DNA from: Octopus sinensis
Lineage: Eukaryota
Length of the DNA stretch: 64,000 bases
Direction: 5' to 3'
NCBI RefSeq assembly: GCF_006345805.1
Contig: NC_043009.1
Location: 310,001 to 374,000 of the forward strand
The translations under genes were made by a program, and so were the position numbers. Within the stretch, counting starts at the first letter, position 1. The number at the start of each line of letters is the position of its first letter. Of the stretch, positions 26,900 to 64,000 are shown piece after piece. The notes under the pieces are model-generated. The model had not been told where the DNA came from. It saw only the letters and a program-made list of their open reading frames with translations, and did not search any database.

Positions 26900-27033
<134 letters not shown>

Positions 27034-27047
27034 AAGAAGAAGAAGAA

Positions 27048-30000: not shown

Positions 30001-31258
30001 CAACGTATAGAAGGTGGTAGAGGCCTTATACAGCTGGAAAACTACTATAAAATAACCACCATAGGACTGCAAAAATATCTACTTCAGAAGGAAGGAAAAC
30101 TGATACAAATAGCGGCAAAACACGAGCAAAACAAAAAACTGTTCTCAGTATTTAAGCAAGCTGACAAATACAAACAAGAAATCATACCACCTAATAAATA
30201 TGAAGAAGAAGAAGAAGAAGAAGAAGAAGAAGAGAAGAAGAAGAAGAAGAAGAAGAAGAAGAAGAAGAAGAAGAAGAAGAAGAAGAAGAAGAAGAAGAAG
30301 AAGAAGAAGAAGAAGAAGAAGAAGAAGAAGGAGATAAAGAAACAACAAAAGCTATAGAACAAATGAAATCCAAACTAAAAATAGAACAGCTACGAACCAT
30401 GATAAAACGATGGCAAGAAAATCCCCTTCATGGTAAATACTGGACTAAACTAAACGCAAAAGAAATAGACAAAGAAAAATCCCAGCAATGGTTGAGAAGA
30501 AACAGAGGGATTTTTAATTGCAGCACAAGACCAAAGCCTCCCCACCAGAAATTATCAAAAACATGTAATGAAAAGAAATATAACAAGTAAATGCAGAATA
30601 TGTGGAGATGAACAAGAAACAATAAATCATATTATCTCTGGCTGCCCAGTCCTCGCTAAGAAGGAATATATTCACAGACATGACAGAGTTGGAACCTACA
30701 TACACTGGAAGCTATGCCAACATTATGGAATAACAACAGAAAAAAGATGGTATAGGCACACACCAGAAAAGATCACAGAAAACGAGAAAGCAACCATACT
30801 CTGGGATATGCAGATACACACAGATAGAGAAATTAAGGCCAACAGACCAGATATAGTTGTCAGAGATCATGCAGAAAAAAATGCTTTCTAATTGATGTAT
30901 CAATACCGGCAGATGACAACGTTTCTCTAAAAGAAATGGAGAAACTTTCAAAATACAGAGACCTGAAAATAGAGGTAACCAGAATATGGAATCTAAAAAC
31001 AGAAACAATTCCTATCATAGTAGGTGCATTAGGCATGATAAAAAAATATTCAGACAAATACATAACAAAAACACCAGGACTTACAAACACATATAACATA
31101 CAGAAAATTGCACTACTAGGCACTGCACACATCCTACGCAGAACACTTTCCATACAATAACCATCAGAGCATCACAACAAATCACAGCACATACCTAAGG
31201 CACACAGAGCTGCGCTCGGTAGTGAAGTGAAAGCACGATATAAAAAATAAAACTACTG
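27048..31258 (+). mobile_element. R4/Dong-like LINE, family A, near full length (A3), ORF disrupted
   Basis: N-terminal RHKWTREEY..Y..W..NKLA.VRR region, RT, knuckle and RLE in fragments 27254-31160; (AAT)n tail at 31259-31478. Confidence 0.92.
30202..30330 (+). repeat. (GAA)n expansion inside the A3 ORF
   Basis: About 43 triplets, versus GAA4-GAT3-GAA at 23152-23175 in A1. Confidence 0.95.
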
Positions 31259-31518: not shown

Positions 31519-31601
31519 ACGTACCCAAACTGTATGCTCATAGCAGTGTCATCTCTGGTGCTTTCATTGCAGCAGTCGCCTTCAAGAAGTTACTTCTTTA
31601 A
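31519..31601 (+). CDS. Exon 4 (terminal), copy 1 (HVPKLYAHSSVISGAFIAAVAFKKLLL*), GPI-signal-like tail
   Basis: Branch-point-like CTAAC at 31491-31495, attttcAG acceptor, phase 1, TAA at 31599-31601, hydrophobic C-terminus. Confidence 0.7.
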
Positions 31602-39789: not shown

Positions 39790-40470
39790 TACCAACGCAT
39801 AATTGTTATTAAATAATATTTCTTTAAATTCGTTATTACAAGGAGAACAATTATTACACCCTATAGTATATGATTTAGCCCTACAAATAATATCCCTATT
39901 TAATTTATGCTTAATAGATCTTTATTTAAGGTCCCAAATATATTTACTGAGACCTGTTGAATTTATAAGATTTTTATTCCTAAAAGAATACAAATGTTGA
40001 GAAATTTTGGATTTAATTTTATTCGAAGTGGACCCTATATAAATACTATTTAAATTAACTTCATTCAAATTCTTATCATTTATTATAGTTACCATACACT
40101 TATAGACTACATTATTTAAAATACAATAATTATTAAATTTTCATGTAGACTTATCACGACATGTACAATAAATTAAATCTTGGTCTTTATTATTATTATT
40201 GGAATCAATATTTAATCTATCTTTATAGAATTTCTTTAATTTAAAAATATTATACAAAGAAACATTATTATTAACATTATTAGTAGTTGAATAACCAACT
40301 CCAAAATTATATTTGGAAAAAATATTACGATATTTTTTATTATCCTTAATAAATACTTCAATTATATTTAAATCTCTTTAATAAGATTTGTTTTAAATTG
40401 AGCCCCAAAAGGAATGATTAACCATATTTTATTTTTATTTTTATCTTTTATATTATGATTATAATTAATA
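39790..40470 (-). mobile_element. Penelope-like element, C-terminal part (RT thumb + GIY-YIG), degraded
   Basis: KIWLIIPFGAQFKTNL; YIGSTSNKIK..HLYSFRNK..NSTGLSKYIWDLK; C-x2-C near the end. Confidence 0.75.
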
Positions 40471-40482
40471 TTATTATTATTA

Positions 40483-40541
<59 letters not shown>

Positions 40542-40566
40542 TATTATTATTATTATTATTATTATT

Positions 40567-43500
40567 CTATGTTTGACTTTTGCTTTATATTTGTACAAGT
40601 TGGCTCCAAGTCTCACCCAGAGACCTCAAGAGACAACAGGGTTGGAAGTTCATGTTGTTGTTATGCCTAGTGTGCCATATATTTGGGGGGTGGGGATGTT
40701 GTACTAATGAATGTCTAAAAAAAAAATTTTTTTTTTTTTTTTTTTTTTTTTAAACCGAAAATATGGTTGTTTTAAACTTGAGGTACATAGAGAGTATTTT
40801 GCGTAGGATATGAGCAGTTCCCATGAGCACTATCTTTTGAACTTCTGCCATTTTTGGGTTTCCTGGTATCTGAGTTAGGTAGCTATCAGCCCCTTTTGCT
40901 ATCATTCCCAGGGCACCTATGACAACAGGTATTGTTTTAGTCTTCAGCTTCCACATTTTGCTGATTTCTATTTCAAGATCTTTATATTTGCTCAGTTTTT
41001 GGTAGGTCCTGACAGATACGTTTATATCGATTGGGACAGTCATATCAATGAGGAGGCATGTTCTTTGTTTGAAGTCTTTCAATATGATGTCTGGCCTATT
41101 TGCATCTATCTTCCTGTCAGTTTGAATGGTGAAGTTCCAGAGGAGTGAGATGTGGTCATTTTCAAGCACTGGGGGTGGTTTGTGTTCCCACCAGTTTTTC
41201 TCATGGGGCAACTCCAGGTTTTTACAGATTACCCAGTGAATATATTGTGCAGCTCTATCGTGCCTGTTGAGATACTCTGTAGCGCTAGAAGACTGCACTT
41301 GGAGACCACATGGTCAATGGTTTCATTTTGTTGCTTGCATACACGACACGTTGGACTGCTTCTGATCTTTAATATGTTGGCCTGGTAGTTTCTTGTTGGT
41401 AGGCATTGATCTTGAGCTGCTATGATAAACCCCTCTGTTTCAGATTTAAGCCAGAGGCCATTAGCCATTGATGGGTCAGGGCTTTGTCGATATCTGCATT
41501 ATTCGCTCTCTTTGGTATTTGCCGTAGAGAGGTTTTTCTTGCCATTTATTATTCAGAATATCTAAGGCCGCAGTTTTGGCACGGTTTTCATGCGCCTAGC
41601 TTTTTCTGTGCTTGTTTCTTGTATGTCTATCTCTAATTCCGAATTGGTTGTATTCGGAATTCACTTAGATATTCCTTTGCCTGTTTTGTTACTGAGTATG
41701 ATGCTTTCTTGTTTTCATGTTTTGAGACAAGTTTTAACATCCAGTCCTCAGAGTTTTCAGGTAGGTGTCTAGGCCAATTGTAGCAATCTTCATTGTTATT
41801 GCCAGTTGCAAAAGACCACGGCCTCCCTCTTTTCTTGGCAGATAGAGTCGTTCTGTATCTGCCTAGGGTGGTGCATTCTATGCATTGTCAACAGTTTCCT
41901 TATTTTTCTGTCGAGCTGACATATTTCAGTAATTGACCAGTTAACATATTGAAACTGTAAGTCACGACTGGTATAGCTAATGCATTGATTGCTTCGATCC
42001 TGTTTCTTGCATTCAGCTCTGTCTTGAGTATTGCTCTCACTCTTCGATAGCATTCTCTCCTGATCCTTTCCTTCATCTCTGAATGCCTTATTCCGTTCCC
42101 TTCAATTACCCCTAGGTACTTGTAGCTCTCCGCTGGGTCTAGGTCTTTTATGACATTCTGTTGGTCAAGGTTAACGTTAGATGTTTCTGTCATTTTTCCT
42201 TTGATAAAGGTAGCCTTTGCACATTTATCGAGGCCGAATTGCATTCTGATGTCGTCACTGAATTGTTTGACTATCGCTAGTAAGCCCTTGAGTTGTTGAT
42301 CATTTTTTGCAAAAAGCTTAAATCATCCATGTAAACGAGATGATTTTATTTTTATCAAACATTTTATACCCGTACTGCGCGTCATTGAGCAGCTTTGAGA
42401 GAGGTATTAAGGATAACAAAGAGGAGTGGTGACAGTGAGTCACCCTGGAAAATGCCACACGAAATTTTTACATCACCAGCATTTAGGGATTCACTGTCAC
42501 TGTTCAGAGTTAGTGTGGTTCTCCATGATCTCATACTTACAGTCAAGAAGTTTCGCAGAGTTGGTGCTATCTTATACATTTCAAGGCATTTCCTAATCCA
42601 GCTATGTGGGGCTATCAAAGCCTTTTTATAGTCTATCCAGGCTATTGATAAGTTTTTGTGTCGTTTGTGACAATCTTCTAAGATCATCTTATTGATGAGT
42701 AGTTGGTCTTTACAGCCGTAGGATCCACGTTTACATCCTTTCTGTTCATTAGGGAATATGCTGCTGTCTGTGTTAAAAACTATAGGTATATTCCGTCAGG
42801 ACAGATGTTAGAGTTTTGTACATAGTTGTTAAGCAGGTTATGGGTCTATAGTTTTTTGGTTCATTTGTTTCTTCACTTTTTGGAAGCAGGAATGTTAACC
42901 CATTAACTAGCCAAGGAGGCATCCTACTAGGGTGTTGCAGAACATCATTGTACAGTTCTGTTAGCAGTTCATGGCTCTCTGGGAAGGCATTCAGCCAGAA
43001 GTTAGAATTTTATCCTTTCCTGGAGACTTCCATTTGCTTGACCTCCTGAGAGCAGATCTTATATCTTCTACCTTGACACCCTCCCACTTTTGCTCTTCTA
43101 AGGGGTCCAGTTCTGTAGATATTCTGTCAATCCAGGGGGCCTTTTCGTTGTGTGTTTTTTCTTCTGCCCAGATTTTATTCCAAAATCTCTGCACTTCTTC
43201 TTTTGATGGTACAGACCCTGCAGTAAACGCTGTTTTTCCTATCTTCCTGTAAAAATTCTTGGTGTTATTTTGAACATGTTGTTGTCCTTGAAAAATCTAA
43301 CACGCTTTTCATACCTCGCTATGCGGGTAGCTTTGGCAGATACCTTTTGTTTGATGGTTTCTATGGTGGCATCAATATCAAGTATATTTTCATATTGTAT
43401 TTTTTCAGTAATTTTTGGGTTTTTGTAGGTTTGGTAGTCTTGTGAGCCTTAAGGTTTTTCAAATATTCAATGTCAGATCTAAAACTTTAATTTGTTGTTG

Positions 43501-45569: not shown

Positions 45570-47334
45570 ATTATTATTACTATAATTATTTGTAATTTTA
45601 TTAAATTTATTATCTTCATTAATTGAATTAAATTTTATCCTATTTTATTATTATTACTATTCTTTTTATTTTTTATTCTAATATTAAATTAATGATTTAC
45701 ATCATCAAAATTCCTATTATTATTAAGACGATAGATACCTAAACAAAATTTATCATAATTCAGATAATTAGGTTTATCATTATTAAAATCATTAAAAAAT
45801 TATCTTTTAAATTATAATTATGTTTACAAATGTTAAAGAATTTAATATTATTATTGTATCCTGTCTCATACAGGGCATTATTATAATAAGGTGCATGTTT
45901 ATAAAAATTCTCTAAATCATAAGAAAGTAATGATATTCTTTTACCTACATTATTTATCAACGATTTTTTTAACAGAAGGTGGATGATTACTATAAGCATT
46001 AATATATCTGAGATTTTGATTAATTTAATGGAATGGTTGGGTTTTACCCGTTATGAAATTAAAATTAACATCTAAATAATTAACATTATACTTCTCATTA
46101 TAAATAGTAATACTTAAACCATTTCTTTTAAAGAAATTATAAAGTTAATCTTTATATAATTCTAATTTTCTATTAGTACAATCCCTAGTAAGTAACATAA
46201 GGTCATCCCTATATAAACCACCCTCCAAATTTAAATTTTCTAATTGAAGTTCTGATAATAAGTAAATACCTACTAAATCAGTAGCCTGAGCAGAATCAGG
46301 TACCCCCTTAGGTATATCAAAAAAGTTTCTAGTATACTTCCAAACCCATAATTTATTATTATATAAAATTAACGATTTCCTAGCCATTTTAATAACATTA
46401 ACTTCATCTATGTTCATTCCTACCTTATTCATTGCAAAGATAAGGGATTTATTAAGTACGATCTCATTAATAGAATAATAATAGTTATCTATATCAATTT
46501 GAATGAATTTATATTTATTTTTATCATTAGTATTATGAAACCATTTTAAAATACCATAAGTACAGTTCCAAAGTTTAAGGTAATTAAATTCATTTAACCT
46601 ATTAATGTATTTATCCAGAATAATTTTACTTAATTTACCTAAATCAGATTTACATGGACAAATTAATCTAACCTTAGGGTTAGAGTAAAAAATTTCTTTA
46701 TGGTCTTTCAAAGTTTTTCTAGGGTGCATAAGTACATAAGGTTCAGATTTATTATCGAAATTATATTTCATAATTATTAATTTAGAGGCTTTATTTATAT
46801 TATAGAGTGTATTTTTTGGAATTTCTTTAACTTTAATAGCTAAATTTCTTAAATAATCGTTATGTTTATTAGTGTATTTATGAAATTTAATTTTTTCACT
46901 ACCTTCCAAATCTGTATTTCTCCATTATATGGAGGTTCCTTCGTAGATTTAAATTTTGAATTAATGTAATTATTAGTATCTACATCATTAATGTTGTTCT
47001 TATTAAAATAGTAGGCTTTCCATTTAATTCTATTAATAAAATCTTTAACATTATTAATAAGTAATAAAATATATTTCTTTCTAGATGGTATAGGAATATC
47101 CTTCAAAGATGAATTCCAAAAGAGTGGTTCTAGTTTACCTGTAAGTTCCATAACCGACGATAATGAGGTTAATATCTCAGAAACATTAGTTATAAATATA
47201 ATAAAAATAATATTTTCTACCAAATATATACGTTTTAGTTATTATTTTGCAATTTACTTAATCATCGGTATATTATCGTTATTTTATTCTTAATATTTTT
47301 ATTATATGTATTTTCTAGATGGTGTAATTTAATT
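45570..47334 (-). mobile_element. Penelope-like element, RT part, degraded
   Basis: TLKDHKE..VRLICPCKSDLGKLSK..IQIDIDNYY..FDIPKG..DSAQATDLVGIYLL..GLYRDD (PLE RT type). Confidence 0.85.
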
Positions 47335-47339
47335 GTATA

Positions 47340-47370
<31 letters not shown>

Positions 47371-47386
47371 TATATATATATATATA

Positions 47387-47428
<42 letters not shown>

Positions 47429-47470
47429 ATATATATATACATATATATATACTTTATATATATACATAGA

Positions 47471-47813
47471 TATAAGCGAGAAAAAAGCAACAAGAATGGA
47501 TAGGTTTTTAGTACAATCGTTTCATACAAGGACAGGCTTTATTAAAAGTTGCAAAAATTGCAGCATATAAACGTGTCCCGTACTCATCAGCTAAAATACA
47601 TGTGAGTTCTCTAGACATCCTAGTGGTTGAGGCTATACTCATGAAGTATAGCCTCAACCACTAGGATGTCTAGAGAACTCACATGTATTTTAGCTGATGA
47701 GTACGGGACACGTTTATATGCTGCAATTTTTGCAACTTTTAATAAAGCCTGTCCTTGTATGAAACGATTGTACTAAAAACCTATCCATTCTTGTTGCTTT
47801 TTTCTCGCTTATA
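47471..47813. repeat. Perfect palindrome: 169-bp arms, 5-nt spacer
   Basis: 47471-47639 is the exact reverse complement of 47645-47813 (checked base by base). Confidence 0.95.
47688..47778 (+). ncRNA. Type I hammerhead ribozyme (mirror copy on the - strand at 47506-47596)
   Basis: ttttag-CUGAUGA-gtacgggac...gtccttgtat-GAAAC-gatt-GUA-ctaaaa; intact core, 6-bp stem I; predicted cleavage after 47772. Confidence 0.8.
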
Positions 47814-47952
47814 ATCACCCCACATTACTGTATTGTTAAAACCGTATAGTTTGTTTTGGTGCATCTAAGTTAGGTACCATATTCAAGTAAATTCATTTAA
47901 ATTAACTTGAATCTTTATTGCTTTTTGAATATATACATATATATATATACTT

Positions 47953-48029
<77 letters not shown>

Positions 48030-48428
48030 ACACATTATATTTATATTTATATACACACACAAATATATAGATTAACACAATATATCTGATTAATAAAATC
48101 GTTTATGCTTGCGCGGTGGTGGTGGGCAATAATAATTTACCGTTCGAAAAGACCTGTGGCGGAAATATTTAAACTTTTGCGGCTGTCAACGCTTTCTCTC
48201 TATAGATACAGACAGACGTACAGTGAGAGAGGTGGTGAAGGAAAGAGTGACAGAGAGACGGCGAAGCTGTCAAACGTCGTTATAGTGCGAAAGGGGAGGG
48301 AAGGAACTTTATAAATAGAGATTACGTTGCTGTCGAAAACCAGAGCCTTACCACGTATTTTTTTTTTGCAGTACTACTGTCGTTATTGCTGCTGCTGCTG
48401 GAAGGAGACATTGTTGTTGTTGTTGCAG

Positions 48429-48466
<38 letters not shown>

Positions 48467-48739
48467 GGTTGTGGTGGTGGTGGTGGTGGTGGCGATGATG
48501 ACGATAATGAAGATGACGATTTTGATTACGACGACGATGATAGTGATGTTGTTGAACAAAATGTACGACGAAGAGCGCTCCAGCCATAACCACTCTGTTT
48601 GCTTCTTCGAAATGATCTACTTAGGGCTACATTATCCAACGTGCTCTCCCCTTCTGAAAAGTCGAACAACCGCATACAGATTCATGCTTCTTGATTCAAG
48701 CAGTAAAGTATGGAAAAGTGTACAGTCTTGCGATGTAGT

Positions 48740-49118
48740 GGAGGTGCAATGGCCCAGTGGTTAGGGCAGCGAACTCGCGGTCATAGAAATCGCGGTTTCG
48801 ATTCCTAGACCGGGCGTTGTGAGTGTTTATTGAGCGAAAACTCCTACAGCTCCACGAGGTACCGGCAGGGGATGGTGGCGAACCCGGCTGTACTCTTTCA
48901 ACATAACTTTCTCTCACTCTTACTTCCTGTTTCTGTTGAGCCTGTAATTCAAAGGGCCAGCCTTGTCACACTGTGTCACGCTAAATATCCCCGAGAACTA
49001 CGTTAAGGGTACACGTGTATCTGGAGTGCTCAACCACTTGCACGTTAATTTCACGAGTAGGCTGTTCCGTTGTAACCCTCCTCGTCGTCGTAAGCGACGG
49101 AGTGCCAACAATAAACTG
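48740..49118 (+). mobile_element. Full-length tRNA-derived SINE with TSD
   Basis: TSD tgcgatgtagt at 48729-48739 and 49119-49129; head shared with the 10175-10481 family, different tail. Confidence 0.85.
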
Positions 49119-49479
49119 TGCGATGTAGTGTCAGTTAATGCTGATCAGTTCCAGAACCTATAGTCAAAGACACTCTTGCCATAAACATCCGTTTTAGTCA
49201 CCCTTCCGCTTTACTTATGATACTAAGGGGAAATATGAGATAAATTCTGATCAAAAATAGTCATCAGTAAAGGCAATTCAAACGTGACTATCAAGTAATT
49301 TATCCGGATCTAGATTATCCTTTTTTTTCTAAAAAAAACAGTAGTGTAATTTTTTTTTAAATGGCGCAGGAGTGGCTTTGTGGTAAGTAACTTCCTTACT
49401 TGGGCAAGTGTCTTCTACTGTTGCCTCGGGCAGACCAAAGCCCTGTGAGTGGATTTGGTAGACGGAAACTGAAAAAAGC

Positions 49480-49525
<46 letters not shown>

Positions 49526-49850
49526 TATGTGTGTGTATGTTTGTGTGTCTGTGTTTGTACCACTAGCATTGCTTGACAACCGATGTTGGTGTGTTCATGT
49601 CCTCATCACTTAGCGGTTCGGCAAAATAGACGGATAGAATAAGTATTAGGCTTGCAAAGAATAAGTCCCGGTGCCGATTTACTCGACTAAAGGCGGAACT
49701 ACAGCATGGCCGCAATGAAATGACTGAAACAAGTAAAAGAGTAATGACAGATATTTCCAGCATGTAAAGCGACCATGTAGATGTTTGCTCTCTTTATCTC
49801 GGGCAATACTTTGTAGATTGGTGCATGGGAGCAGTTGCCTTAAGGCATTG

Positions 49851-50330
49851 GCAGTTGCTCAGAGGCACCGCGGGACGAGGGGTCCAATACAGACCTATGT
49901 TGAGGGTTGCTCTCAATATATAAATAATATGTGGCCCAGTAAACTGATTTTCTCAGGAGCCTTGGGTCTAGGGGTCCAATTCAGACCTATGTATGTTGTG
50001 GCTTGCTCTCAATATATAAATAATATAGGACACAGTGAACCTATTTGCTCGGGGGCTTCGGGCCTAGGGGTCCAATTCAGTCCTATGTATGTTGTGGCTT
50101 GCTCTCAGAATATAAATAATATAGGGCCTAGTGAAATGATTTGCTCAGGAGCCTTGGGTATAGGGGTCCAATTCAGACCTATGTATGTTGTAGTTTGCTC
50201 TCACTATATAAATACTATAGTGCCCAGTGAACTGATTTGCACAGGGACTTCGGGTCTAGGGTTCCAATTCAGATCTCTGCATGTTAAGGCTTGCACTCAA
50301 GATATAAATTATATAGGCCCCAGTGAACTG
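49851..50330 (+). repeat. 96-bp tandem repeat, ~5 units; array resumes at 54547-54700
   Basis: g(g/t)tccaat at 49881, 49973, 50069, 50165, 50261. Confidence 0.92.
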
Positions 50331-53300
50331 CGGGGGTGGGATCTGAACTCTTGTACTCGTAGAGAGGAAAAAAGGGAAAAACCATTATAGGTTTCCCGTT
50401 TCTGGGGATTACAAAATAATTTTTGGCGTGAAATTTCGACCGTTGAAGGCGATGTTGTTGCGTGTCACCCCCGCAGGGGGTGAGATTCGAACTGTTACCC
50501 TAGTCGACGGGAAAAAATATATATATATAAAAAAATAAGGAAAAAAACACATAGGGTTCCCGTTTCTGGGAATTACCAATTAATTTTTGTGTGTGAAATT
50601 TTGCCGTTGAAGGCTCTGTTATTGCGCCTCGCCCCCCCTGCGGGGATGGATCTGGAATGTCATCCTCGTCGAGTTTCCCGTCTTTTGGGATTCCATTTTG
50701 TGCAAAAATGTCTGTCGAAGTTATTTCGAAAACACTTTCACTGGATGAGACAAATTAAGAAATTCTCTGCAGTTGCCGCAGTGGCAACGGAAAATGTCGA
50801 ATTACAGAAAGGAAAGCTCCCAGAGCTTTTTGGAAGAATAAAAGAGGAGGGGGTAATATAAAAATATCACCCTCACCTAGTGTGGAAACATTTAAAAGAA
50901 TTACAGTTGTTTTTAAAACATACTGTCCATCAACTAAAAAATTCAAACACTTTGAAAAGTGTACAATTGAAAAATGTCTGGCTCCAATGTGGAAAGACAT
51001 TAAGTACATAGCGAGAGGCCGGACATATGGCACGATAGAGGCCAGATTCGAAAGAGAAACAAAAGCCAAAGAGTCCTCGGTGAGTCCCTTGAAAACGAAG
51101 GACTTGGTGCTTCTGCCGACCTAAATGGGAAGATGAACTGCGCGTGTTAGGGTGGCAGAAGTACCACCTGAAATTGACGCAAGGGAGGTGAATGCCGCCT
51201 TGTTGTATAACAGGATGGACAAAATCCCCTTCCTTCAGATAACATGCTCTGCCTCACAAAATTGGCTCGGGCAGAGCATTTCTTCCATTATTCAGGGGAC
51301 TCCGGAGGATATTGCAATGCTTCCGGAAGGAGTACTCTCGGGGGAGGATATCGTCCTCAAAATACAAGTGGAGGGAAAGAAGCAAACATTCTATGAATGT
51401 GGCAAAAAAGGTCACATTCGTAAAAATTGCGAACAGTGGATAAGAAAAGTTACACAGACACCAGGCCCCTCAAATACAAAAACAGACCCCAAACCCGCAC
51501 ACACTTTAGCCCCTACAGAAACAAATATTCCCGCTTCCCCATCTGTAGTGCCCACCCCCAAACATGATACCCAAATGCCCCAGCCCATGCACACAACAGT
51601 CCCGACAACAAAAACACCCACCCCCTCTGAAGTGGCACCAGAACGTGTAGCTCCCCCGGACAACACCATGGAGGTGGTCGAGGAGGAGTTCACAACAGTA
51701 GTTCGGAAACGAATACACACACCTTCCCCATCCACATCCCCCGCAAAAGAAAAGAAAAAAGAAAACACTGTACCACAAACAATAAAACGACCCCGGCCCA
51801 TTGTCCCAAAAGAAAAGGATAAAAAGAATGACAATGAAACAAAAGCTCTTATAAAATATGATACCAGAAACAAATATATAGCAGACATCGTAACAAAACA
51901 CTGCACTGCCACGCTGTTCGAACAGTACAAGGAATTGAGAGAGAGGTGTGCATGGATAGGAGAAAAACTTTACAAGGAACTGAAAGATAGGCATCCAGAG
52001 GCTATCAAAAGCATCCTGGACCTTCCAGGTTATATGAAGGAGGAGGAGAAAAGGGCTGCCCCACGTGTTGTGAGGTCAGCTCCAACATCACCAGTCAAGG
52101 GTAAGTGTTTTTTTCCCTGATTATGGCGACACTTAATCTTGGGTGTTTGAATGTGCGTGGTCTGAGCTCGAAGTGAAGGCAAGCTTGTTTCCTCGACGAC
52201 CCCAGACAACACGATATGCATGTGATGGTTGCTACAGAGACCAAGCTGGACAGTCTACAAACCTTCTCACCCCTTCTGAATGACTATGAGAAAATCATGT
52301 CTCCTAGCCAGACCAGAGGGAGAGGGGGTGTAGCAGTACTGGTTCGAAAAGGCTTGGCCTTGCAGACAATTACAGTCTATGTAGACCCAGAAGGTGGGCT
52401 GGTCGTCCTTGAGGTGACATACAGCAGTAAGGCCTTCAGGTTGATCGGGATTATTGCACCGTGTGCTAGAGGATTTCAAACTGATTTTTATCGGTACCTA
52501 GAGAACTTTCTCGTGACGTCGAAGTCATTAGCGGTGTTAGGAGACTATAACGCTATCGTTGACGCACGCATCGGTAGCGTTGGCTCGATCTATAGGAAAG
52601 TGAAATCACGTCTCGTAGATCTGCTTAAACGTATTCAGCTGGAAGATCGTTACAGACTTGACCATCCGAACGTCCCAAAGTGGACCTGGATGACTGGCGA
52701 CGGAAGGTTCAAGTCTTCTTTAGATAGGATAGTGATAAGAACTAGAGATTAGTCTAGTTTTAGCTGTCCACAACTTGTCCAAGTAGCTTACACTGACCAT
52801 AAAATGGTTAAGTGTAGACTGGACATAGATAGTACAGTTAAGAGAGGATCCGGTTACTGGAAACTGAACAAGTCTATTTTGACTTGTGAGGCATACCGTA
52901 GTCGATTGAGAAATTAGTGCAGAGGGCGTTAACCGGCGCGGTGGTTAATAACCGATGGTGGTTCGCCCTCAAGAGAGCCATTCGTTTTGAGTCTGTTAGG
53001 TTTAGCCGTCAGCTAAGACTAGATAAGGCCAGAATAGAAGGGCAACTAGTTAAGGGCCTAGAGAAGACGTTGAGATTGAGCTCTACATCTCACATTCTGG
53101 CAGCGAGAACGGCCTTGGACCGTCACCTCAAAGCCAAACATGAGGGGTGCAGAGTTCGGGCTAAGGTGCGCGCATTGGGCCGTGATGGAATTAATGTTGT
53201 CGGATGGCCCTTGGTGTCTTCCTGTCTGGCGGCCCGAGGAGGTGATCGAGGTACTGGGCGAATGCCCCCGGGGAGAAGTCGCCGAGTCTCGATGGTCTGC

Positions 53301-54545
53301 CTTACGAATTTTACAAAACTATGCCAGACTTGTTCGGGCACATGCTGGCCAGCGTCTACGCCAATTGGCAGCAGAATGGGAGAATTCCCAAGTCTGCGAG
53401 CCGAGGGGTGGTGACGTTGATCAAGAAGGACCTGAGCAAGGGGGACGAGATAGGGAACTTCAGGCCCATAACTCTGCTGAACACGGAGTTAAAGATTTTG
53501 GCCAAGGTGCTATCGAATAGGTTGGCGCGGCTCGTGGGCAAACTTGTCGGGGAAGCGCAATAGCGCGCTATCCGGGCAGGACGATCCACGACAATCTCCA
53601 CCTTATACGCTACTCCTTCAAGAGGGTGGGGAAGCTCTCTGGCGCAAGGGGGGGGGGCACTGATACATTTAGACCAGTCTAAGGCATTCGATAGGGTCGA
53701 CCATCGGTACTTGGCGGCGGTCTTCGAGGAGGCTGGCCTGGGCCCGACCTTCCGCGGTTGGATTGCTGCATTGTACAGCGACATCGATTCCGTCTTAAAA
53801 GTGAATGGTTTCCTTTCGAAGCAATTCAGGATCGAGTGCTCAGTGCGCCAGAGATGTCCCGTGACCCCGCTTTTGTATGTATTGGCTCTCGAGCCATTAT
53901 TGCGGAAGTTGGAGGCACTAGGGGGCGCACCGCATGATCTATTGTGCGGAAGAGGAGCTACGGCGTATGCGGATGACATCTCCATCATCGTGGCGGATGA
54001 GGGCCAGCTTCCAGTGGTGGAAGAGGCTATCAAACGTTAGGAGACGGTGGCTGGAGCAAAGGTTAACAAGGACAAGTCAATTGGTTTGCAGCTCGGCACC
54101 TGGAGGGGCAAGCTGATGCCGTCCAATAACGTCGTGGGGCGTTGGACGGAAGGTCCTGTTAAGCTGCTCGAAGTCTGGTTCGGGCCAGACCTCCGGATAG
54201 AGAAAAATTGGAGTGAGGTGGCCAACAAGGTGACTGCTCTAACCCAGACCTTGTCTGGGCGAGCGTTATCCTTGCTAGGAAAGGCGGAGGTGGTGCAGAT
54301 GTTTATAGCATCGGTTATCACCTACCGTCTGGCCGTGGTGTCTTACCCCGATTTGTGGCTGAACAAGTTGGAGAGAATTTTTTCCGCTTTTTGTGGAAAG
54401 GAGGAAAGCCACTCGTGAAGCGCTCTGTCTGCTGTCAGGAACCGCTAAAGGGTGGGCTAGGGATGCCTTGGCTGAGAATGCGAAAATTCGCGTGAAGGTT
54501 GAGGCACCTCTGGCTTTACCTGGATGCAGAGCAGGTGTGGTCTCG
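50331..54545 (+). mobile_element. L1/Tx1-clade LINE, 5'-complete and 3'-truncated, degraded
   Basis: 5' monomer repeats; ORF1 ~50710-52120 with a degenerate knuckle FYECGKKGHIRKNC; ORF2 from 52123 with AP endonuclease (NVRGL, ETK, GDYN, LDRI, TDHK) and RT (RPITLLN, DQSKAFDRVDH, YADD at 53966-53977). Confidence 0.9.
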
Positions 54546-56755
54546 GGTTGCAATTTAGATATCTGTATGTTAAGGCTTGCAATCAAGATATAAATTATAT
54601 AGGCCCCAGTGAACTGTTTTCCCAGGGGCCTCAAGTGTCTAGAGGTCCAACTCAGATCTATGTATGCTGTACCTTACTGTCAATAAATAAATACTCTAAG
54701 GCTTCCACATATTTTCGTCTACCAAATTCATTCAAAAGGCGTTTGTCGGGCCGAGGTTATAGTAGAAGACTACATCTTAAGGTGTGCGGCGCAGTATGGG
54801 GAGAAGATTTCAAAGGTAAGAATTATTAATAAATTTATAATTTAGGGTATCTAAGAGATACCGCCACGCTGGAAATAGCAGCAAAAATCTGACTCTAAAA
54901 CTACATTAAATATTCATAGAGCACCAGGAGATAAGACAAACTGACAACATAAACTAGCAAAAAAATTACTGGATCCAGTGATAGCAGTAGTGGTAATGGT
55001 GGTGGTGGTAGTATTTTGTTGTTGTTGTTTAAACTCATTTCAACCGTGTTTGGCCAGATCTGTGATCAAAGTGTTTCCAACCATGACTGTCTTGTCTTTT
55101 CCTCCCTGACACTAAGTACCTTATCATTGTATCCATTATCCAATGCATCTTCCCTCTTCTTTTAAGACAGTAAACTTTGATTTTGATACCTTACCACGCT
55201 TATTTCACTCACCTACCCCCTCCCCATACTCTATCCCTTGCACCTCTCCCTCCCTTCTCCCCACCACTCCCCCCTCTGGACTGCAACCCGCCATTCTACC
55301 CACCTTCCATTTTGCTACACCGAAATCAACGCCGTCTTTTCACTTAACACCCTTTGCCTTTCTTCCTTTCTATCTGCTGTTGACGAAGGAATATTGTCTT
55401 CTCTGGAACTTTCCCACGGTGTTGTCCGGAAAGTTCATGCCGACTTATAGTAGCTTACTTTTCGACTTATTTTAGAACACGGTTGAGTCCATAAAATAGG
55501 ATTTGACTGCAACCTCCATTTAGAGCACAGTTTAAGCTATCTTTTCGTGGAAGAAGGTTTATGTTCCTATAATCTGTGTTAATTCTGTAACTTTTTAAAA
55601 TGGAAAATAAGAAAGTTCATCTTCGGCACTTGATGCTTTGGAAACCAGACAAAAAATTGCTGCACTCGGTTGGAATGTGTTACTCCAGCCTCCATATTCA
55701 CCAGATATTGCTCCTTCGGATTTCCACTTATTCAGGTCTCTGCAGAATAGTCTTAATGGTAAAAATTTCAATTCCTTGGATGACGTAAATATGACACCTT
55801 GATGAATTCTTTGCCATGAAACCACCCCAATTCTGGGAAGAGGGTATTTTCAAGTTAAAGAAAAGATGGAGACCCATTGTGAAACAAAAGGGTTTATATT
55901 TGGTTGATTAAAAATTCAATGGCAAGTATTTATTGACCTTTTTCTTTCTTTTAAAAATCGGCACGAACTTTCCGGACAACCAAATATATTTGAAGATCTA
56001 CACTTGTACACTATTTTCTTGCTTTTTGTATATCTTTCTTTACTCCTTGGGGCAAGATGGCGAGATTGCTGGGGTGGGGTTCCATGTTACAAGAGTCGGG
56101 TATTTAGTTCCTGGCCCAGGCCACTTGGCAGTAGGTAAATGTCAAGTTCCTTTATTCCTTCCTAAGCGTTAAATTAATCAGTTAGTAGCGTTTGTTGTTT
56201 TCGTGTTAACTTATAGAATACACACACACGCACACACACTCACACACACACACATATATATGTATATACATGTATACATACATACACACACACATACATA
56301 TACATATGCAAATACAAATAACCACGCGCCACACACACAAATACACGCTCACAGGCATACATAAATACATGCATATATATTCATACGTTCACATGGGAAT
56401 TTGCAAACCTGTTTTTGTCTCTGTGCACGATTGTTTGCGCATTTGTGTGCGCGCCCATGCCTATATATATATATATATATATATATATGTAATTGCCTTG
56501 TTTGTATTCGGTGGAAGAGCCACACCTACAATAGTCAGGGCTGAAAATTACGTAGAAAGGAAGAAAATAAAAAGGGTTGCCGTCTTCTAACCTAACAATT
56601 CGCTTCAGTTACATCGGCTGACAACTACACTTGAAGGAGCAACAGTTTTGCGTCCAGTCAAAAGAAAAAACAAAACTATCCTATAGTCTTAAAAATAATC
56701 AGCGTTCGGCGTTAATTTTCCTACATACAGTAATAAAACTAAAAATCTTACCACC

Positions 56756-56792
56756 ATGAACGGATTATATTATGGAATATGCCTTTTATTCG
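56756..56792 (+). CDS. Exon 1 of paralog copy 2 (MNGLYYGICLLF-)
   Basis: Identical to 5274-5310, including Kozak context and donor. Confidence 0.8.
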
Positions 56793-56842
56793 GTAAGTTG
56801 TATTAACATCTAGAACTTTTGGGAGAGAATGAGAAACAGAGG

Positions 56843-56898
<56 letters not shown>

Positions 56899-59800
56899 GA
56901 CGATAGTGTTTTACATTTCTTTGTTTATAATTTTAAGTGCAAAGCCAGCAAATTTGAATAAGGCGGACTTAGTCGAATCGGTTTTTATTTTCGATGACGT
57001 AAAAAGATACCTTGATGAATTCTTTGCCATCAAACCACCTCAATTCTGGAAAGAGAGTGATTTCAAGTTAAAGGAAAATACGGAGACACATTGTGCAACA
57101 AAATAGTTCATATCTGGTTGATTAAAATTTAATGACAAGTAATTTTTTACCTTTTTCTTTCCTCTAAAAATCGGCACGAACTTTCCGGTCAACCCAATAT
57201 ATATTTACTCGACAATAAACGTGGCGTGCAAAGAAGTTTATTCTATTCTATTTTATTTCGTTTTGTTTATTTACTTATTTATTTATTCATTTTGTAATAT
57301 AACCGAACAATCACTTTATTCTTACTGAACCAGTCATTTCGAAAAGTTTTAATTATTTTTCTACTTTTTTGTTGTTGAAACTATTCTATTGCCATTTCCA
57401 ACCGCGTTCGCGATTTTTCACGAGACATGTTTAAAAATTTGCTAAAAGAGATCAGTGAAAATACTTTTTTTAAACATGGCTTAAATTAATTCAGTGAAAT
57501 GAGCTGAACAGTGCAGTTAGCGGACATTAGCAGCTAGAACATCAGAACTATAAGTCTTTTGCCACCATATTTTTGAAAAGATATACTGCTTTATCCCAAT
57601 TAGTTTTGAAATTAATAAAGAAGGATGGTTTCAAATTTTGGCATGAGCCCAGCAATTTTAAGGGAGTTGGACAAGTCAATTAAATCGAGCTTAATTAAAT
57701 TGGAGTTTAAGGCTGCGCATTGGCGGAATCAGTAACGAATTGAACAAAATACCAAGCGGCATTTCTTCCGGTCTTTACGTTTTGCGTTCAAATTCCACCG
57801 AGGGTGATTTTTACATTTCATCCTTTCCTGGTTTACTGACCACTGACGTCGATATAATCGACTTATCCCATCCACTGAAACTGCTGGTTTTGTGCCAAAA
57901 TCTAAAACTGTTATTAATCTAGTGTGCTGAGTATAACAATTAACATGGAATTTCAGTGGAAGGGGTTAATTTTGATTTCTTTTAATCAAGTCTATATCGT
58001 AGAAAAAGGAGTGGTGGCCTGGGGTGGGTTGGTATCAAAAAGGTTAACAAATTAAAGGGCTCAATATTGAAAACATTATAGTCGAAATATTCAGCAATGA
58101 AGGAATGAATGCTTAAAAAGGTATTAAAAAGGGTAAGTATTCAATACAGACAGCAGTGGATCCTCACCGTTTGACGACGAGGATTTGGTTGTTCTATCAA
58201 CAGAATTGTTTGTCTCTTAATTAGAGAGTGAATTACTGCGTATTCCTCAGACACGAGCAACTTCCCGTAATTCTCCGCCAGAACCAGCTTCACACATCGA
58301 GCGTGACCAGGCCGTACATTTTGAATTACAGGAAACTTTTGAATTCATGCGTTTGTACATTTTCCGTCTACCCAACTTTATGAACTGGAAGGAGGCTGCC
58401 CAAAAAGACATTTGCCCAGGATCTCAGGCAGAAGGATCAAACGCGTGGCCTCATTCAAACGCGGTCTTCATAAACAATCGGCCGTGCTTCGTCTACTTAT
58501 ACATATACATGTTGCCTGAGTATACTTGGAAGTGTACTGTGTTTTTCAACACAGTAGGTCTTTAAAGGAGGGCTTTTCCTGGACGAAATACACAAGCCCC
58601 GCCCCCACACACATACACGTGATGTTTGGTTGCGCAATCAGCATGACGTTTCCTTAACGAGTTTCATGATTGGCTAGTTGCAATTTGACGTGAACAGCAT
58701 ATGCGACGGTACGTGTCGGTCGATGTTTCGTCCCACTTAAACTGTAATTATATAACTTTTAAACATGATATTAGTTATAAAGACATTCTGTTGCATTTTC
58801 TAAATAAATACACCATAACCAAACGTTCTCACTTGTTAAATAAACACTAATAACTAAAAGCCGGAAGAATAAGGATGAGAAAGAGTTGGTAGAGAAATAA
58901 TAAAAGAAAATGGAATACGATATACAAGGAAAAAAAGAGTGACTAAAGAGGCGACACTTTATTCCACGTTGCTCCAGTTGTAGAAACGTCTCTGGTGCCA
59001 AACTGTATCGGCCTTGGCTTTCACTTGGATAACATTAGTGGCGACTGGTATGCATGGACGGCTGCTGGCCTTCCATAAATAACCTTGCCTGGAATATATC
59101 TTATTCCATTTTCTTTCATCATTTTCCTACCAACTCTTTCTCATCCTCATTCTTCCGACTTTTAGTTTATTAGTATTTATTTAACAAGCATGGACGTTTG
59201 GTTATGGTGCAGAGGATTGCGGTCACCATCAGGAGAGACCATGTGTGAATCCGACGGTAGTGGGCATAGATATTTAGGGATTTTGGAGCAGGATGACATT
59301 CTACACAAAGAAATGAAAGTCAAGGTCAGCGAGGAGTATCAAAAAAGGGTGAAGATGGTGCTGACATCCAACCTGAATGTCAAGAATTTGATTACTGCAA
59401 TGAATATCTGGGCAGTTGCGGCGATCAGATATAGTGCGTCCATCCTAAAATGGACAAAAGAGAATATATGAACACTGCATAGAAGGACGAGAAAATTCAT
59501 GACGCCGCATGGGGCGCTACTCTCTAAACCAAACGTAATACCTGTCATACCGTCTACTCAATGCCTGTCATACCGTCTATCATTTTTGTAATAGACTTTT
59601 GAGGTCCTTCAACTTTCATGATACTTTGTTTCGTGTGGGGAGACCACAGTAGACAACAGTATTCAGGCTAAGGTCGGGCAAAAGTGGAGAAGAGAAGGAT
59701 AATGGTGTGGATATCTCATGACTGGAAAGTTATGAGAATCCAGAAACACATTCCGCAGGCCATGTCAACTTTGCTGTTTATATGAGAGGCCCAGCTTATG

Positions 59801-60559
59801 CTGTTGTCCACAATTACTCCCAATATTCTGATGTTGTTGGATGGCACGAGAGTTTCACCTGAAGGAAGGGAGTATGGGAGTTTCAGGGTGTCTTCTTTTC
59901 CGAAGTGGATTAATTAGAATTTTGTCCTCGTTCAGCAGCATATTATTCTTTTCCGACCATTGGATGACAGCCGGTAGATCTGACTGAATGTATGTCCGGT
60001 CACCCACTTCCTTGATGACCTTCTGGATCTTAGAATTGTCAACAAAGATTCTTATGTTGCTGTGCTTGATGATGTCAGCAATGTCATTGATGTAGATGAT
60101 GAAAAGAAGTGGGCCAAACATAGCGCCTTCTGGAACACTACTACTGACTTTGGCTGGGCTTGATTTTACTCATTCGACTACAACTTGTTGGGTTCCGTCT
60201 GTCAGGAAACACTTGATCCGTTGTAGTAATCCAATGCTGAAATCAAGGTATTCAAGCCCTCTCCCAAAGCTCTCAAACTGTCATCAAAGTGATACAGGAG
60301 CTGTATTAGGCAGTTCCTTCCATTACAGTACCCGTGTTGGTCTGGGTTCAGCACTTTCAAGAAAGTGGGTTTTTCGTGATCTCACCACTCTCTCAAATAC
60401 CTTGATAATATGAGATGAGTGCGGTCGCACTGTAGTTCACTGCAAGGGACTTGTTTCCCGTTTTGAAAATCGGGACAACAGACTGGGACAAAACCGGTAC
60501 AGTCTATATATGTATGTAATATGTATGTATTTGTAGGGACAAAACTTCAAAATCAAATC

Positions 60560-61240
60560 TAATTTTACTTGTGCTTCAGAAAACAGAATGTATGTCATAA
60601 ATTGCTCGGGCTGCCACCAAAACTACATGGAGCCCACAGGATTATCGCTCAGACAACATATTGCATCCCCAGAATACAGAATGATACCCTTTGGTGAACA
60701 CATTGAGAAATGCGCAAAGCCACTACTACCACAATTTATAATCTTTCAAATTATATCAAGGTGCTGCTGGAACACCAACACATGTTATATTAAACAAGGA
60801 AACGCTCTTCATTGAAAAATACAAACCAAAACTTAATCATTTCTAACATGTTTAAATAAGGAAACTCACCTCATTGAAAACAATATGAAGCAAAATCTAA
60901 CAACATTCTATTCTTTCTAATCTAAAGCATGTTTAACTAGTCATTCCCAACATGTTTGATTATCTCCCCTTATACCGGAAAAAATCCCTGATTACCTTCC
61001 CTTGCCCGGAACTCCATATATCACAGCATAGTGAAGACATGACAGGATGTAGGTAAAGAAATTTCAGAACTTTTGAAAAGAAAACACGAAACCGGTTATT
61101 TCTTCAAAATCTGTTACGATACACAAAATTTTATAACATTTTTCCAAACACAACGACTTAAATACATTCTTTAACCATATAACACAAGCTTTCTGTAGTT
61201 TTTTCACTCTTTTTTTATTTTAGATATATTTATAAATATA
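60560..61240 (+). mobile_element. Penelope-like GIY-YIG remnant + 3' region, present only in duplication copy 2
   Basis: YVINCSGCHQNY..TGLSLRQ..PEYRMIPFGEHIEKCAK. Confidence 0.65.
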
Positions 61241-61293
61241 TATATATATGTACGCGTATATATATGTATGTATATGTACATATAAATGTATAT

Positions 61294-61333
<40 letters not shown>

Positions 61334-61509
61334 GTATCCTTGTATATCTATATATATGCATGTTTATACTTGCATATATATGTATCTATATATATATACA
61401 TATATATATACATATATATATATGTACATATATATGTATATATATATATATATATTCTATATATATATATATATAATGTATAGTATATAATAATGTATAT
61501 ATACATGTA

Positions 61510-61621
<112 letters not shown>

Positions 61622-62070
61622 TTATATATTATATATTTATATATATATAAACATACATAGGCGCATGGCTCAGAGTCTAGAGCGTCGACATTACGATCGT
61701 GAGTTTGTGAGTTCGAATCCCAGACCGGGATGCGAGTTGCCTTCTTGAGCAAGACACTTTATTTCATGCTGCTCCAATTCACTCAGCTGTAGAAATGAGT
61801 TGCGACGTCACTGGGGCGAAGCTGTATCGGTGTTTGCCTTTCCCTTTCGATAACAATGGTGGCGTGGAGAGGGGAGGCTGGCATGCATGGGTGACTGCTG
61901 GTCTTCCATAAACAACCTTGCCCGGATTAGTATCTGGGAAGGTAACTTTCTAAGTGCAATCCCATGCTAAGTCATGACCGAAGGGGGTCTCAGACAGACA
62001 GACACACACACACAAACACACACGCACACACACATACATACACACACATATATATATATATATAATACAC

Positions 62071-62106
<36 letters not shown>

Positions 62107-62138
62107 ATTTATGTAATGCATATTATTTTTTGTTTCAG

Positions 62139-62244
62139 TGATTGGCTGTGCCATGGCTGACTGCAACATGCAAAAGATGATGGAATGCCAAAGTCAATAC
62201 GCTCCGAAGATGCAAGACGGCGGAGATAAAGAGACTATGTGCAA
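62139..62244 (+). CDS. Exon 2 of paralog copy 2 (VIGCAMADCNMQKMMECQSQYAPKMQDGGDKETMCK), frame intact
   Basis: Canonical AG/GT; 106 nt, phase 1 to phase 2; three mature-domain Cys conserved with copy 1. Confidence 0.82.
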
Positions 62245-64000
62245 GTAAGATAAATAAATAAATAAAAAACAAAGAATTTTTTTCATTCTTCCATCGTTCT
62301 CTTCTTCTTAATACATTGTCAGGAGATTTAGTTTCGTACTCATGAGGAGCCAGGTTCGATCCACCTAAGTGGTGCCTATGTCAAGTTTTGTTAACCTCTA
62401 AATCTAGGATTGACTTAATCCGCGTGGCGAGGACACAGCTCCAGTGTTCAGGAATTTGGAAGAACAAGTAGTCTCCCCTTAATTGCGCCCTATTCTTAGT
62501 GACTTTCTGACCCGGAGAGGTACTACTCTACAGTTATAGATCCAGCAACAGATTGATCCTGTGGCCATGGCGTTGCATCAGGTCTACCTGCCAGTGAGTA
62601 TTTTTGTATGGGAGTCAGCGATATAATTGGAAAAAAATACATTCAAAGGGAGAGGCGAAGGTCACTCGTGTGTGTGTGTGAGTGTGTGTGTGTGTGAGTG
62701 TGCGTGTGTGTGAGTGTGTGTGTGTGTGAGTGTTTTTCTATGCTCCTCCCACCACCGCGTAACAACCACTGTTGGATTATTTATGTCTCTATAACTTTGT
62801 TTGTGGAGGTGCGTGGCTTAGTGGTTAGGGTGTCGCCATCATTAGCATAAGAATGTGGTTTCGATTCCTGGACCGGGCGATGCGTTGTGTTCTTGGGTAA
62901 AACACTTCATTTCACGTTGCTCCAGTCCACTCAGCTGGCAAAAATGAGTAGCCCTGCGATGGACTGGCGTCCCGTCCAGCTAGGGTACTCATATACCATC
63001 GAAATAGGGAAACTGGGCCCATGAGCATGGCTAGGCTTTAAAAAGTGCGAATTTATTATTATTTTATTTTTTTGTAATTTTGTTTGGCAAAACCGCCCGA
63101 TAGAATAAGTACTTAGCTTCAAAAGCGAAAGCGAGTACTGGCATCAATTTGTTCGACATCAAAATAGAGCCCCAGGAGGGCCGTCTGATAACTAAAGCAA
63201 GTAAAAGAAAATATGGAGGAAAGGTTATTTATCGTCCATTTTATGGAAAATTAATAACACTAATTTCAAATAATATACACTTTCACACCAGGCGGCGAGC
63301 TAGCAGAACCGTTAGCACGCTGGGCGAAATGCTTTGCGGTATTTCGTCTGCCGCCACGTTCTGAGCTCAAATTCCGCCGAGGTCAACTTTGCCTTTCATC
63401 CTTTCGGAGTCGATTAAATAAGTACCAGTTATACACTGGGGTCAATATAATCGACTTAATTCGTTTGTCTGTCCTTGTTTGTCCCCTGTGTGTTTAGCCC
63501 CTTGTGGGTCGTAAAGAAATAGGTATTTCATCATTCTTTGCGTTCAAATTGCGCAGTGGTCAGCTTTCCCTCTCATCCTTTCGGCATCGATAAATTAAAT
63601 ACCAGCTACGTTCTGGGGTCGTACTGGACCCCACCCCCACAAAAAATTCGTTCTTTGTTTCTAGTGTAGGGAAAGAATACACACTTTCAGTCAACTTAGA
63701 AAACCATCTTTTATTTATTTAATTTTTTTGTTCTTTACTTTTTTCAGTCATTTCAGTGCAGCATGCTGCAACATGGCCTTGAAGGGTTTTAGTCGAACAA
63801 ATCGACCGCAGGACTTATACTTTGCAAACCTAGTACTAACTCTATCGGTGTCTTTTGCCGAAATGCTAAGTTACGGGAACGTAAACACGTCAGAATCGGT
63901 TTCCAAGCGATATCGGGGAGACAAACACAGACACACAGAAAGACACACGCACAAACACGCACACACATATATATTTATATATATATATATATTTATATAT

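Follow-up and report, generated by a model that had tools for sequence, protein, structure and literature searches.

Why should a coding exon differ more between two copies of a gene than the introns adjacent to it? This question is raised by a stretch of 64,000 bp from Octopus sinensis (referred to as the window), which as a whole maps to approximately CM016871.1:310,001-374,000 and contains two copies of the gene LOC115218432. The exon concerned is exon 2 of copy 2, located at 62139-62244 on the plus strand; the gene product is an uncharacterised protein of 115 amino acids (aa). An earlier note on this DNA had ascribed the divergence of exon 2 either to positive selection on the ectodomain or to resistance against gene conversion. 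Comparing gene copies from O. sinensis and O. vulgaris, we lean, with somewhat better than even confidence, towards the view that old exon-2 types have been retained amid gene conversion in a recombining array.

Divergence of the domain exons between copies 1 and 2

LOC115218432 consists of four exons with lengths of 37, 106, 122 and 83 nt, the last one including the stop codon. A signal peptide is encoded by exon 1 and the beginning of exon 2, a domain of ~68 aa with six Cys and three predicted helices by exons 2 and 3, and a hydrophobic C-terminal tail ending in AHSSVISGAFIAAVAFKKLLL by exon 4; the protein would be secreted or membrane-tethered. Self-comparison of the window revealed a segmental duplication with copy 1 at ~3347-15700 and copy 2 at 54793-64000, the latter position being the window end. 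As the earlier note had suggested, we extended the sequence past position 64000 into segment L002 (O. sinensis CM016871.1:356756-454561), whose positions 1-17245 are 100% identical to window positions 46756-64000. Exons 3 and 4 of copy 2 were found there, and four O. sinensis copies were counted (Os1 to Os4, with copies 1 and 2 of the window being Os1 and Os2).

The exons at both ends of the gene do not differ between copy 1 and copy 2: exon 1 (5274-5310 and 56756-56792, both on the plus strand) shows 0/37 differences and exon 4 (31519-31601, plus strand, in copy 1; L002 ~27172-27256 in copy 2) shows 0/83. Exon 1, which was located by reading identical runs between the copies, had already been described as identical; it lies within a run of 78 identical nt and is the same in all 8 copies examined from the two species. 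Exon 2 of copy 1 (13590-13694, plus strand, 105 nt) carries 22 substitutions in 105 positions and one 1-nt deletion relative to copy 2, which agrees with the ~22-24 differences in 106 nt estimated before. Exon 3 (122 nt; 17868-17989, plus strand, in copy 1; L002 19757-19878 in copy 2) differs at 18/122 positions. Non-coding divergence between the two copies amounts to 5.5% over 10,334 aligned, unmasked columns. Intron 2 contains 197 differences in 2922 positions, and for 13801-14100 the earlier estimate of ~93% identity was accurate (6.3% differences, i.e. 93.7% identity). The excess over intron 2 has a Fisher p = 3e-6 for exon 2 and p = 0.004 for exon 3. Exon 2 also has more differences than any of 99 windows of 104 columns taken from outside the exons (mean 5.7, standard deviation 5.2, maximum 21); several of the windows with the highest counts consist of transposable-element (TE) or microsatellite sequence that aligned badly. 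No other part of the repeat unit has diverged as far as the two domain exons.

The over-divergence of exon 3 had been overlooked. Intron 2, too, is more diverged over its first ~110 nt than further on. These ~110 nt show 9.8% substitutions as well as indels of 6, 4 and 8 nt versus the other types, and in copy 1 they form a type-specific tract (13695-13805, plus strand) common to the O. vulgaris copy with the same exon 2. The remainder of the intron (13806-17867 on the plus strand in copy 1) is less diverged, being a mosaic that is ~5-7% different from copy 2. Overall, the type-specific block reaches ~110-170 nt into intron 2. On the 5' side, both this block and the alignable sequence around exon 2 end at a (CA)n/(TA)n/(TG)n microsatellite located next to the exon-2 acceptor (61985-62106 in copy 2; copy 1 equivalent 13240-13557). 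A mutational hotspot spreading from this microsatellite was considered and rejected, as the 45 nt separating it from the exon show a single difference. All copies examined, in each of the species, have long (TA)n/(TG)n/(CA)n repeats next to the exon-2 acceptor (in the window at 13240-13557 and 61230-62106).

Selection on exon 2 was assessed with 8 sequences from the two species, comprising the four O. sinensis copies and four copies from O. vulgaris (OvA to OvD). Using the pairwise method of Nei and Gojobori (NG86), we obtained 4 synonymous (Sd) and 16 nonsynonymous (Nd) differences between Os1 and Os2, corresponding to a ratio of nonsynonymous to synonymous divergence (dN/dS) of 0.77, or of 0.62 with the intact OvA. 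Across all comparisons of the exon-2 type of copy 1 with the other types, dN/dS ranges from 0.5 to 1.2 and the bootstrap intervals include 1. Maximum likelihood (ML) estimates of omega under model M0 are 0.8-1.05 with three codon-frequency schemes, not different from 1, and model M2a gives no improvement over M1a for exon 2 (p = 0.47). With dN/dS not above 1 in this data set, the proposal of positive selection on exon 2 could not be upheld. At the same time, synonymous divergence in exon 2 (4/16.5) is above the intron rate of 0.067 (p ~0.02).

Exon 3 behaves differently. Omega under M0 is 4.1-4.6 (likelihood ratio test (LRT) p 0.007-0.012), M2a is favored over M1a with p = 0.001, and only 1/341 null simulations at omega = 1 attained the observed LRT. 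When exon 3 was split at a recombination breakpoint, codons 1-27 kept the signal (omega 5.6-7.8, p 0.008-0.03). Os4 and OvB differ in this exon by six nonsynonymous and 0 synonymous changes. These values come from seven short sequences and our own code, and recombination inflates site-model tests. Within the domain, a signal of diversifying selection is thus detectable in exon 3, not in exon 2.

Exon-2 types, recombination and competing explanations

According to their exon 2 the copies were grouped into type A (Os1, OvA), type B (Os2, Os4, OvB), type C (Os3, OvC) and type D, which was seen only in O. vulgaris (OvD). Types A, B and C are each nearly unchanged between the two species, with 0-2 substitutions: Os1 and OvA differ by 1 substitution and 1 indel, Os3 and OvC by 2 substitutions, and Os2 and OvB are identical at 106/106 nt. 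Between the types the distances are far greater. Type A differs from each of B, C and D at 20-25 of 105 positions, and B, C and D differ among themselves at 10-14 of 106. For orientation, non-coding divergence is 4.7-6.9% between paralogs and 0.5-0.8% between clean orthologs. We polarised the 24 differences between A and B with the exon of Argonauta: 8 match type A, 9 match type B and 7 match neither. This even split speaks against a burst of change in either type.

Recombination among the copies is evident in several places, and both the introns and exon 3 are mosaics. At 13900-14265 (100%) and 20600-21300, Os1 is 99.5-100% identical to OvC, whereas its positional ortholog OvA is only 86-97% identical to Os1; in the same segments OvA equals OvD. 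These tracts of identity between Os1 and OvC and between OvA and OvD indicate conversion tracts in O. vulgaris. Os2 and OvB share the same exon 2, yet their distal intron 2 is non-homologous. In exon 3, 28/171 site pairs are incompatible by the four-gamete test, and positions 81 and 86 bracket a breakpoint; in exon 2 incompatibility applies to 9/325 site pairs, mostly involving OvD. Introns 1 and 2 contain four-taxon site patterns of the kinds "concerted" and "third".

Resistance to gene conversion, the second option of the earlier note, fits these data better than selection on exon 2, considering the trans-specific types, the raised dS, the symmetric changes and the mosaics. Together with the block reaching into the intron, these features argue that the coalescence of exon 2 would be older than that of its flanks. 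Through unequal crossing-over or gene conversion among array members, exon 1, exon 4 and the flanks may have been homogenised or exchanged again and again, with the exon-2 types and ~100-170 nt of adjacent intron escaping homogenisation. The escape could be due to selection keeping distinct versions of the ectodomain, or the types' own divergence might block conversion tracts.

A number of points weigh against retained old types. Counts of site patterns supporting orthology, concerted evolution and the third grouping are 91:0:0 in the 5' flank and 37:5:6 in intron 1. Flanking non-coding DNA is not grouped by species; it is mainly orthologous and only local tracts were exchanged after speciation. 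Since the post-speciation patterns follow orthology, any large-scale homogenisation of the flanks has to predate speciation, and we infer it rather than observe it. The argument from synonymous sites is based on only 4-5.5 changes in ~17 sites. Even inside the type-specific tract, the 21% divergence of the exon exceeds that of the adjacent intron (~10%), which leaves room for some excess driven by selection. The ML codon models were our own implementation, run on 7-8 short sequences with fixed neighbor-joining trees and on recombining data.

Classical accelerated evolution would place positive selection on exon 2 itself, acting after the duplication (~5-7% intron divergence) and without homogenisation of the flanks, in the manner of venom PLA2, small-serum-protein or conotoxin genes. 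We regard this as rather unlikely, despite a nonsynonymous divergence of exon 2 (16/82.5 = 0.19) that clearly exceeds the intron value of 0.067 (p = 1e-4) and despite the contrast between invariant signal-peptide and tail exons and variable mature-domain exons. Exon 3 of the same domain, with omega ~4, points in this direction as well, as do the 9 nonsynonymous and 0 synonymous differences between the mature domains of Os3 and OvC, an M2a fit placing 56% of exon-2 sites at omega ~2 (non-significant), and the existence of comparable arrays (PMC6609765). However, dN/dS in exon 2 is never significantly above 1, and its synonymous sites have diverged as much as the nonsynonymous ones, beyond the intron rate. 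In addition, the types are nearly static after speciation (0-2 changes per 106 nt), the changes in the A and B lineages are symmetric, and the introns were exchanged among copies and therefore do not provide a clean neutral clock. The boundaries of the diverged block raise another scenario, in which exon 2 of type A and the proximal intron were pasted into the copy 1 lineage by one ectopic conversion from a distant, unsampled family member, the flanks never having been homogenised. The block is indeed short and bounded (it begins inside exon 2 and extends ~110-170 nt into intron 2) and carries indels specific to its type, type A is about equally far from B, C and D (20-25/105), which are mutually closer (10-14/106), and a second, older branch (LOC106875478-like) adjoins the gene in Argonauta and is found on the same chromosome in O. 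vulgaris. Yet a donor was not found among the family members sampled; the known distant paralog is only ~40% identical in protein and thus much further off than type A. The intron part of the tract (~10%) is less diverged than the synonymous sites of the exon, and because copy 1 has a distinctive exon 3 as well, a minimum of two patches would be required. We consider such an import improbable.

Two further explanations concern the integrity of copy 1. Its exon 2 lacks, between 13645 and 13646, a G that is present in the O. vulgaris ortholog, whose exon is intact at 106 nt. With the resulting 105 nt the spliced frame is lost after ...ECQR and runs into a stop in exon 3, giving 52 aa in total. 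Consequently the 14 amino-acid differences, 2 synonymous codons and 3 conserved Cys reported earlier are correct only after repair of this gap; as assembled, copy 1 is frameshifted, which the earlier note had missed. If copy 1 had died through the frameshift and exon 2 had drifted since, it would fit that protein searches returned no O. sinensis type A model. Such decay is very improbable nevertheless, given that the frame of the O. vulgaris ortholog is intact, with an exon 2 differing by 1 substitution and the indel and an exon 3 identical to copy 1 at 122/122 positions. Neutral decay cannot outpace the intron rate, and the exon is 3-4 times above the intron; the divergence between A and B is also symmetric. 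The frameshift does not account for the divergence of exon 2. Frame-breaking indels in exon 2 of 2/4 O. sinensis copies also cast doubt on the quality of the local consensus, and one might suspect that the "paralogs" are uncollapsed haplotypes or products of mis-assembly, the contrast being allelic or spurious. We give this hardly any credence: the arrangement (118.5 kb in O. sinensis vs 119 kb) and the exon types recur in the O. vulgaris assembly, which is independent, TE insertions differ between the copies, and one copy is inverted. As the O. vulgaris orthologs of Os1 and Os4 are intact, the indels are species-specific lesions or consensus errors, and copy 1 is either a very recent pseudogene or an assembly consensus error.

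Array organization, gene models and surroundings

In O. sinensis the array contains at least four copies, with Os3 inverted. The O. vulgaris copies sampled (n = 4) are OvA (segment L003, OX597826.1), OvB and OvD (both in L004, same chromosome) and OvC (L001, OX597836.1). In both species the array comprises at least 4-5 copies in tandem and inverted arrangement. The spacing between Os1 and Os4 (118.5 kb) matches the one between OvA and OvB (119 kb) and the flank identities fit, which makes Os1/OvA and Os4/OvB positional orthologs. OvC had been tried as the ortholog of copy 1 and was rejected, being a mosaic on another chromosome; likewise OvB was rejected as the partner of Os2, because spacing and flank identity assign it to Os4.

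In Argonauta hians (L005, BAAFZT010000071.1; 10001-42278 and 48508-52278) only one LOC115218432-like gene is present, again built of four exons in this structure and with an exon 2 of 106 nt. The presence of one gene there implies that the expansion of the array is specific to the Octopus lineage sampled. The Argonauta gene adjoins an inverted member of the older LOC106875478-like branch, and in O. vulgaris this branch lies on the same chromosome as the array. A profile search and an exhaustive search of representatives returned no significant relatives outside the octopods (Octopus, Argonauta).

An exhaustive protein search linked the exon at 62139-62244 to XP_029644102.1 (P0003, "uncharacterized protein LOC115218432 isoform X1", O. 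sinensis). Residues 1-48 of this protein, and likewise of P0010, match exons 1 and 2 of copy 2 exactly. Isoform X1 is a chimeric model composed of exons 1-2 of copy 2 and exons 3-4 of copy 4 (L002 10001-87806, from window position 56756 onward); it spans ~78 kb and crosses the inverted copy 3. The chimera probably arose because the own exon 2 of copy 4 is frameshifted. This exon (L002 84331-84434) has 104 nt owing to a 2-nt deletion (GCTCCG to GCCG), while the positional ortholog OvB is intact. The O. vulgaris models P0001 and P0002 stop exon 3 early (L001 19094-19215), at a GT that reads GC in O. sinensis; the natural exon 3 donor lies 48 nt beyond the splice site used by P0002. Both models are likely mis-annotated, shortened versions of the ordinary 115-aa product.

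On the copy 1 side the duplication was seen within the window at 3347-15703 (plus strand) and the full gene unit extends to ~32220. The copy 2 side (54793-64000, plus strand) is cut by the window end and carries on in L002 to exon 4. In copy 2, exon 1 consists of ATG, 12 codons and 1 nt (MNGLYYGICLLF) and ends in phase 1. Its DNA sequence is ATGAACGGATTATATTATGGAATATGCCTTTTATTCG, followed by the donor GTAAGT. Exon 2 of copy 2 (Os2, type B) is intact with 106 nt and is framed by an acceptor reading ...tttcag and a donor reading gtaaga. It codes for the end of the signal peptide (VIGCAMA) and then for helix 1 and the loop of the mature domain (DCNMQKMMECQSQYAPKMQDGGDKETMCK); joined to exon 1 the translation reads MNGLYYGICLLFVIGCAMA followed by DCNMQKMMECQSQYAPKMQDGGDKETMCK. 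Exon 3 of copy 1 (AASDLMNCMGSASTGCGEEMEKTFDQARSQIAELGCPQSS) corresponds to helices 2-3, and exon 4 of copy 1 encodes the hydrophobic C-terminal tail, ending in VPKLYAHSSVISGAFIAAVAFKKLLL before the stop codon.

The DNA of the window is rich in microsatellites, tRNA-derived short interspersed elements (SINEs) and open reading frames (ORFs) for the reverse transcriptase (RT) of long interspersed elements (LINEs). Intron 3 of copy 1 (21536-31240) contains two partial LINE-like elements in tandem with RT ORFs, which are absent from the O. vulgaris segment L001; this LINE sequence accounts for ~9.7 kb. A related LINE-like element is found inverted at 40426-42444. Directly upstream of the start of the copy 2 repeat unit lies a retroelement (51152-54400, GC content up to 51%) whose gag-like ORF includes a CCHC zinc knuckle and which also has endonuclease/RT-like ORFs.

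Similarity of the protein to known families and systems

The N-terminus of the protein is hydrophobic (MNGLYYGICLLFVIGCAMA followed by D) and was judged by eye to be a signal peptide. Six Cys are present in every full-length family member, including Argonauta and the O. bimaculoides paralog. The C-terminal tail is kept across the family and is modelled as a low-confidence helix; it could be an attachment signal for a glycosylphosphatidylinositol (GPI) anchor, or a short membrane anchor. The best Pfam match of the copy 2 product P0010 is NRN1 (neuritin, PF15056) with 19.2 bits and E = 0.0014, below the gathering score of 27, aligning residues 19-82 to positions 9-73 of the 89 model positions. 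The type A protein P0011 gave no NRN1 match, and only 2/8 members had one at E <= 1. For RGM_N (PF06535) the best score was 18.7 bits (P0004, E = 0.0021), under the gathering score of 24.2, with 3/8 members at E <= 1.

An AlphaFold2 (AF2) model built on a shallow alignment predicts helices at residues 23-38, 43-60 and 66-81, with a mean pLDDT of 57 and values of 64-74 in the domain. Starting from this low-confidence model, the top two Foldseek matches in the PDB were 4ui1_D and 6z3m_I, the N-terminal domains of RGMC and RGMB (probability 0.80-0.85, E 0.25-0.43, TM 0.53-0.57 on the target). A sequence search of the PDB with the family profile yielded no meaningful match. In the literature, searched by locus name and for neuritin in octopus, no paper on the locus was found. 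The classification as a surface molecule in the earlier note is plausible in view of the signal peptide and the hydrophobic tail, with the similarity to neuritin and RGM_N staying below threshold. Because independent weak signals converge, a neuritin/RGM-N-like, probably lipid-anchored three-helix protein is a reasonable working description; membership in either family is not established.

The pattern is a fresh case of something already familiar, a recombining array with variable exons for the mature domain; the family showing it here is octopod-specific and uncharacterised. Lineage-specific expansion of cell-surface genes is a known trait of cephalopod genomes. To these expansions the locus adds a small octopod-only family with a putative neuritin/RGM-like fold, and its variable part resembles in behavior the diversified exons found in venom, serum-inhibitor or MHC genes. 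A tentative, broader interpretation, to which we assign a limited chance, is that a neuritin/RGM-N-like, probably GPI-anchored family formed a recombining array in the O. vulgaris/sinensis lineage in which the ectodomain exons were kept distinct and shuffled, with exon 3 positively selected, so as to constitute a diversified repertoire for recognition or signalling. If true, this repertoire (neural, chemotactile or immune) would be of a kind not described in cephalopods. If the variation is functional, four short exons and a 70-aa domain would offer a compact system on how conversion and selection build and maintain a surface repertoire, and this in an invertebrate with a complex nervous system. 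The locus also calls for caution: where copies recombine, exon divergence above that of the intron is in itself no proof of positive selection.

Neuritin (NRN1/CPG15) is a conserved low-copy gene. Like the octopus protein it is small, with a signal peptide, a six-Cys domain of ~65-70 aa and a short hydrophobic C-terminal segment, which in the octopus protein may direct GPI anchoring; the octopus family differs in being octopod-only and multi-copy with hypervariable domain exons. To our knowledge, neither BMP/GDF nor Neogenin binding has been reported for the octopus protein. The RGM N-terminal domain is a three-helix bundle with three disulfides, belongs to GPI-anchored proteins and binds BMP/GDF ligands (PMC7354924). 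The low-confidence AF2 model of the octopus protein has three helices and six Cys. With 115 aa encoded by four short exons, it comprises nothing past the three-helix domain and the tail and lacks the full RGM architecture.

With respect to gene organization, the array resembles systems with diversified exons. The array of small serum proteins (SSPs) in the habu snake also consists of tandem paralogs in which the mature exons exceed the introns in divergence and the signal exon is conserved. The same accelerated-exon pattern, with KA/KS around 1 or higher, is known from conopeptide genes and from the PLA2 genes of snake venom. In the SSP array, KA/KS amounts to 1.5-1.7 at an intron KN of 0.05-0.065 (PMC6609765). 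In contrast to these three systems, octopus exon 2 has a dN/dS of ~1 with raised dS, and omega exceeds 1 in exon 3 only. The octopus genes furthermore have no link to venom or serum, and extensive mosaicism marks recombination as a major player.

In the major histocompatibility complex (MHC), lineages of the peptide-binding exons persist across species while recombination or conversion homogenises the introns. We know of no immune function of the octopus family. It shares with the MHC the trans-specific exon types, flanks that are less diverged than the exon, and the shuffling of segments in and around the exons. Unlike MHC alleles, however, the octopus types are paralogs at fixed positions of an array, and after speciation their introns mostly track orthology.

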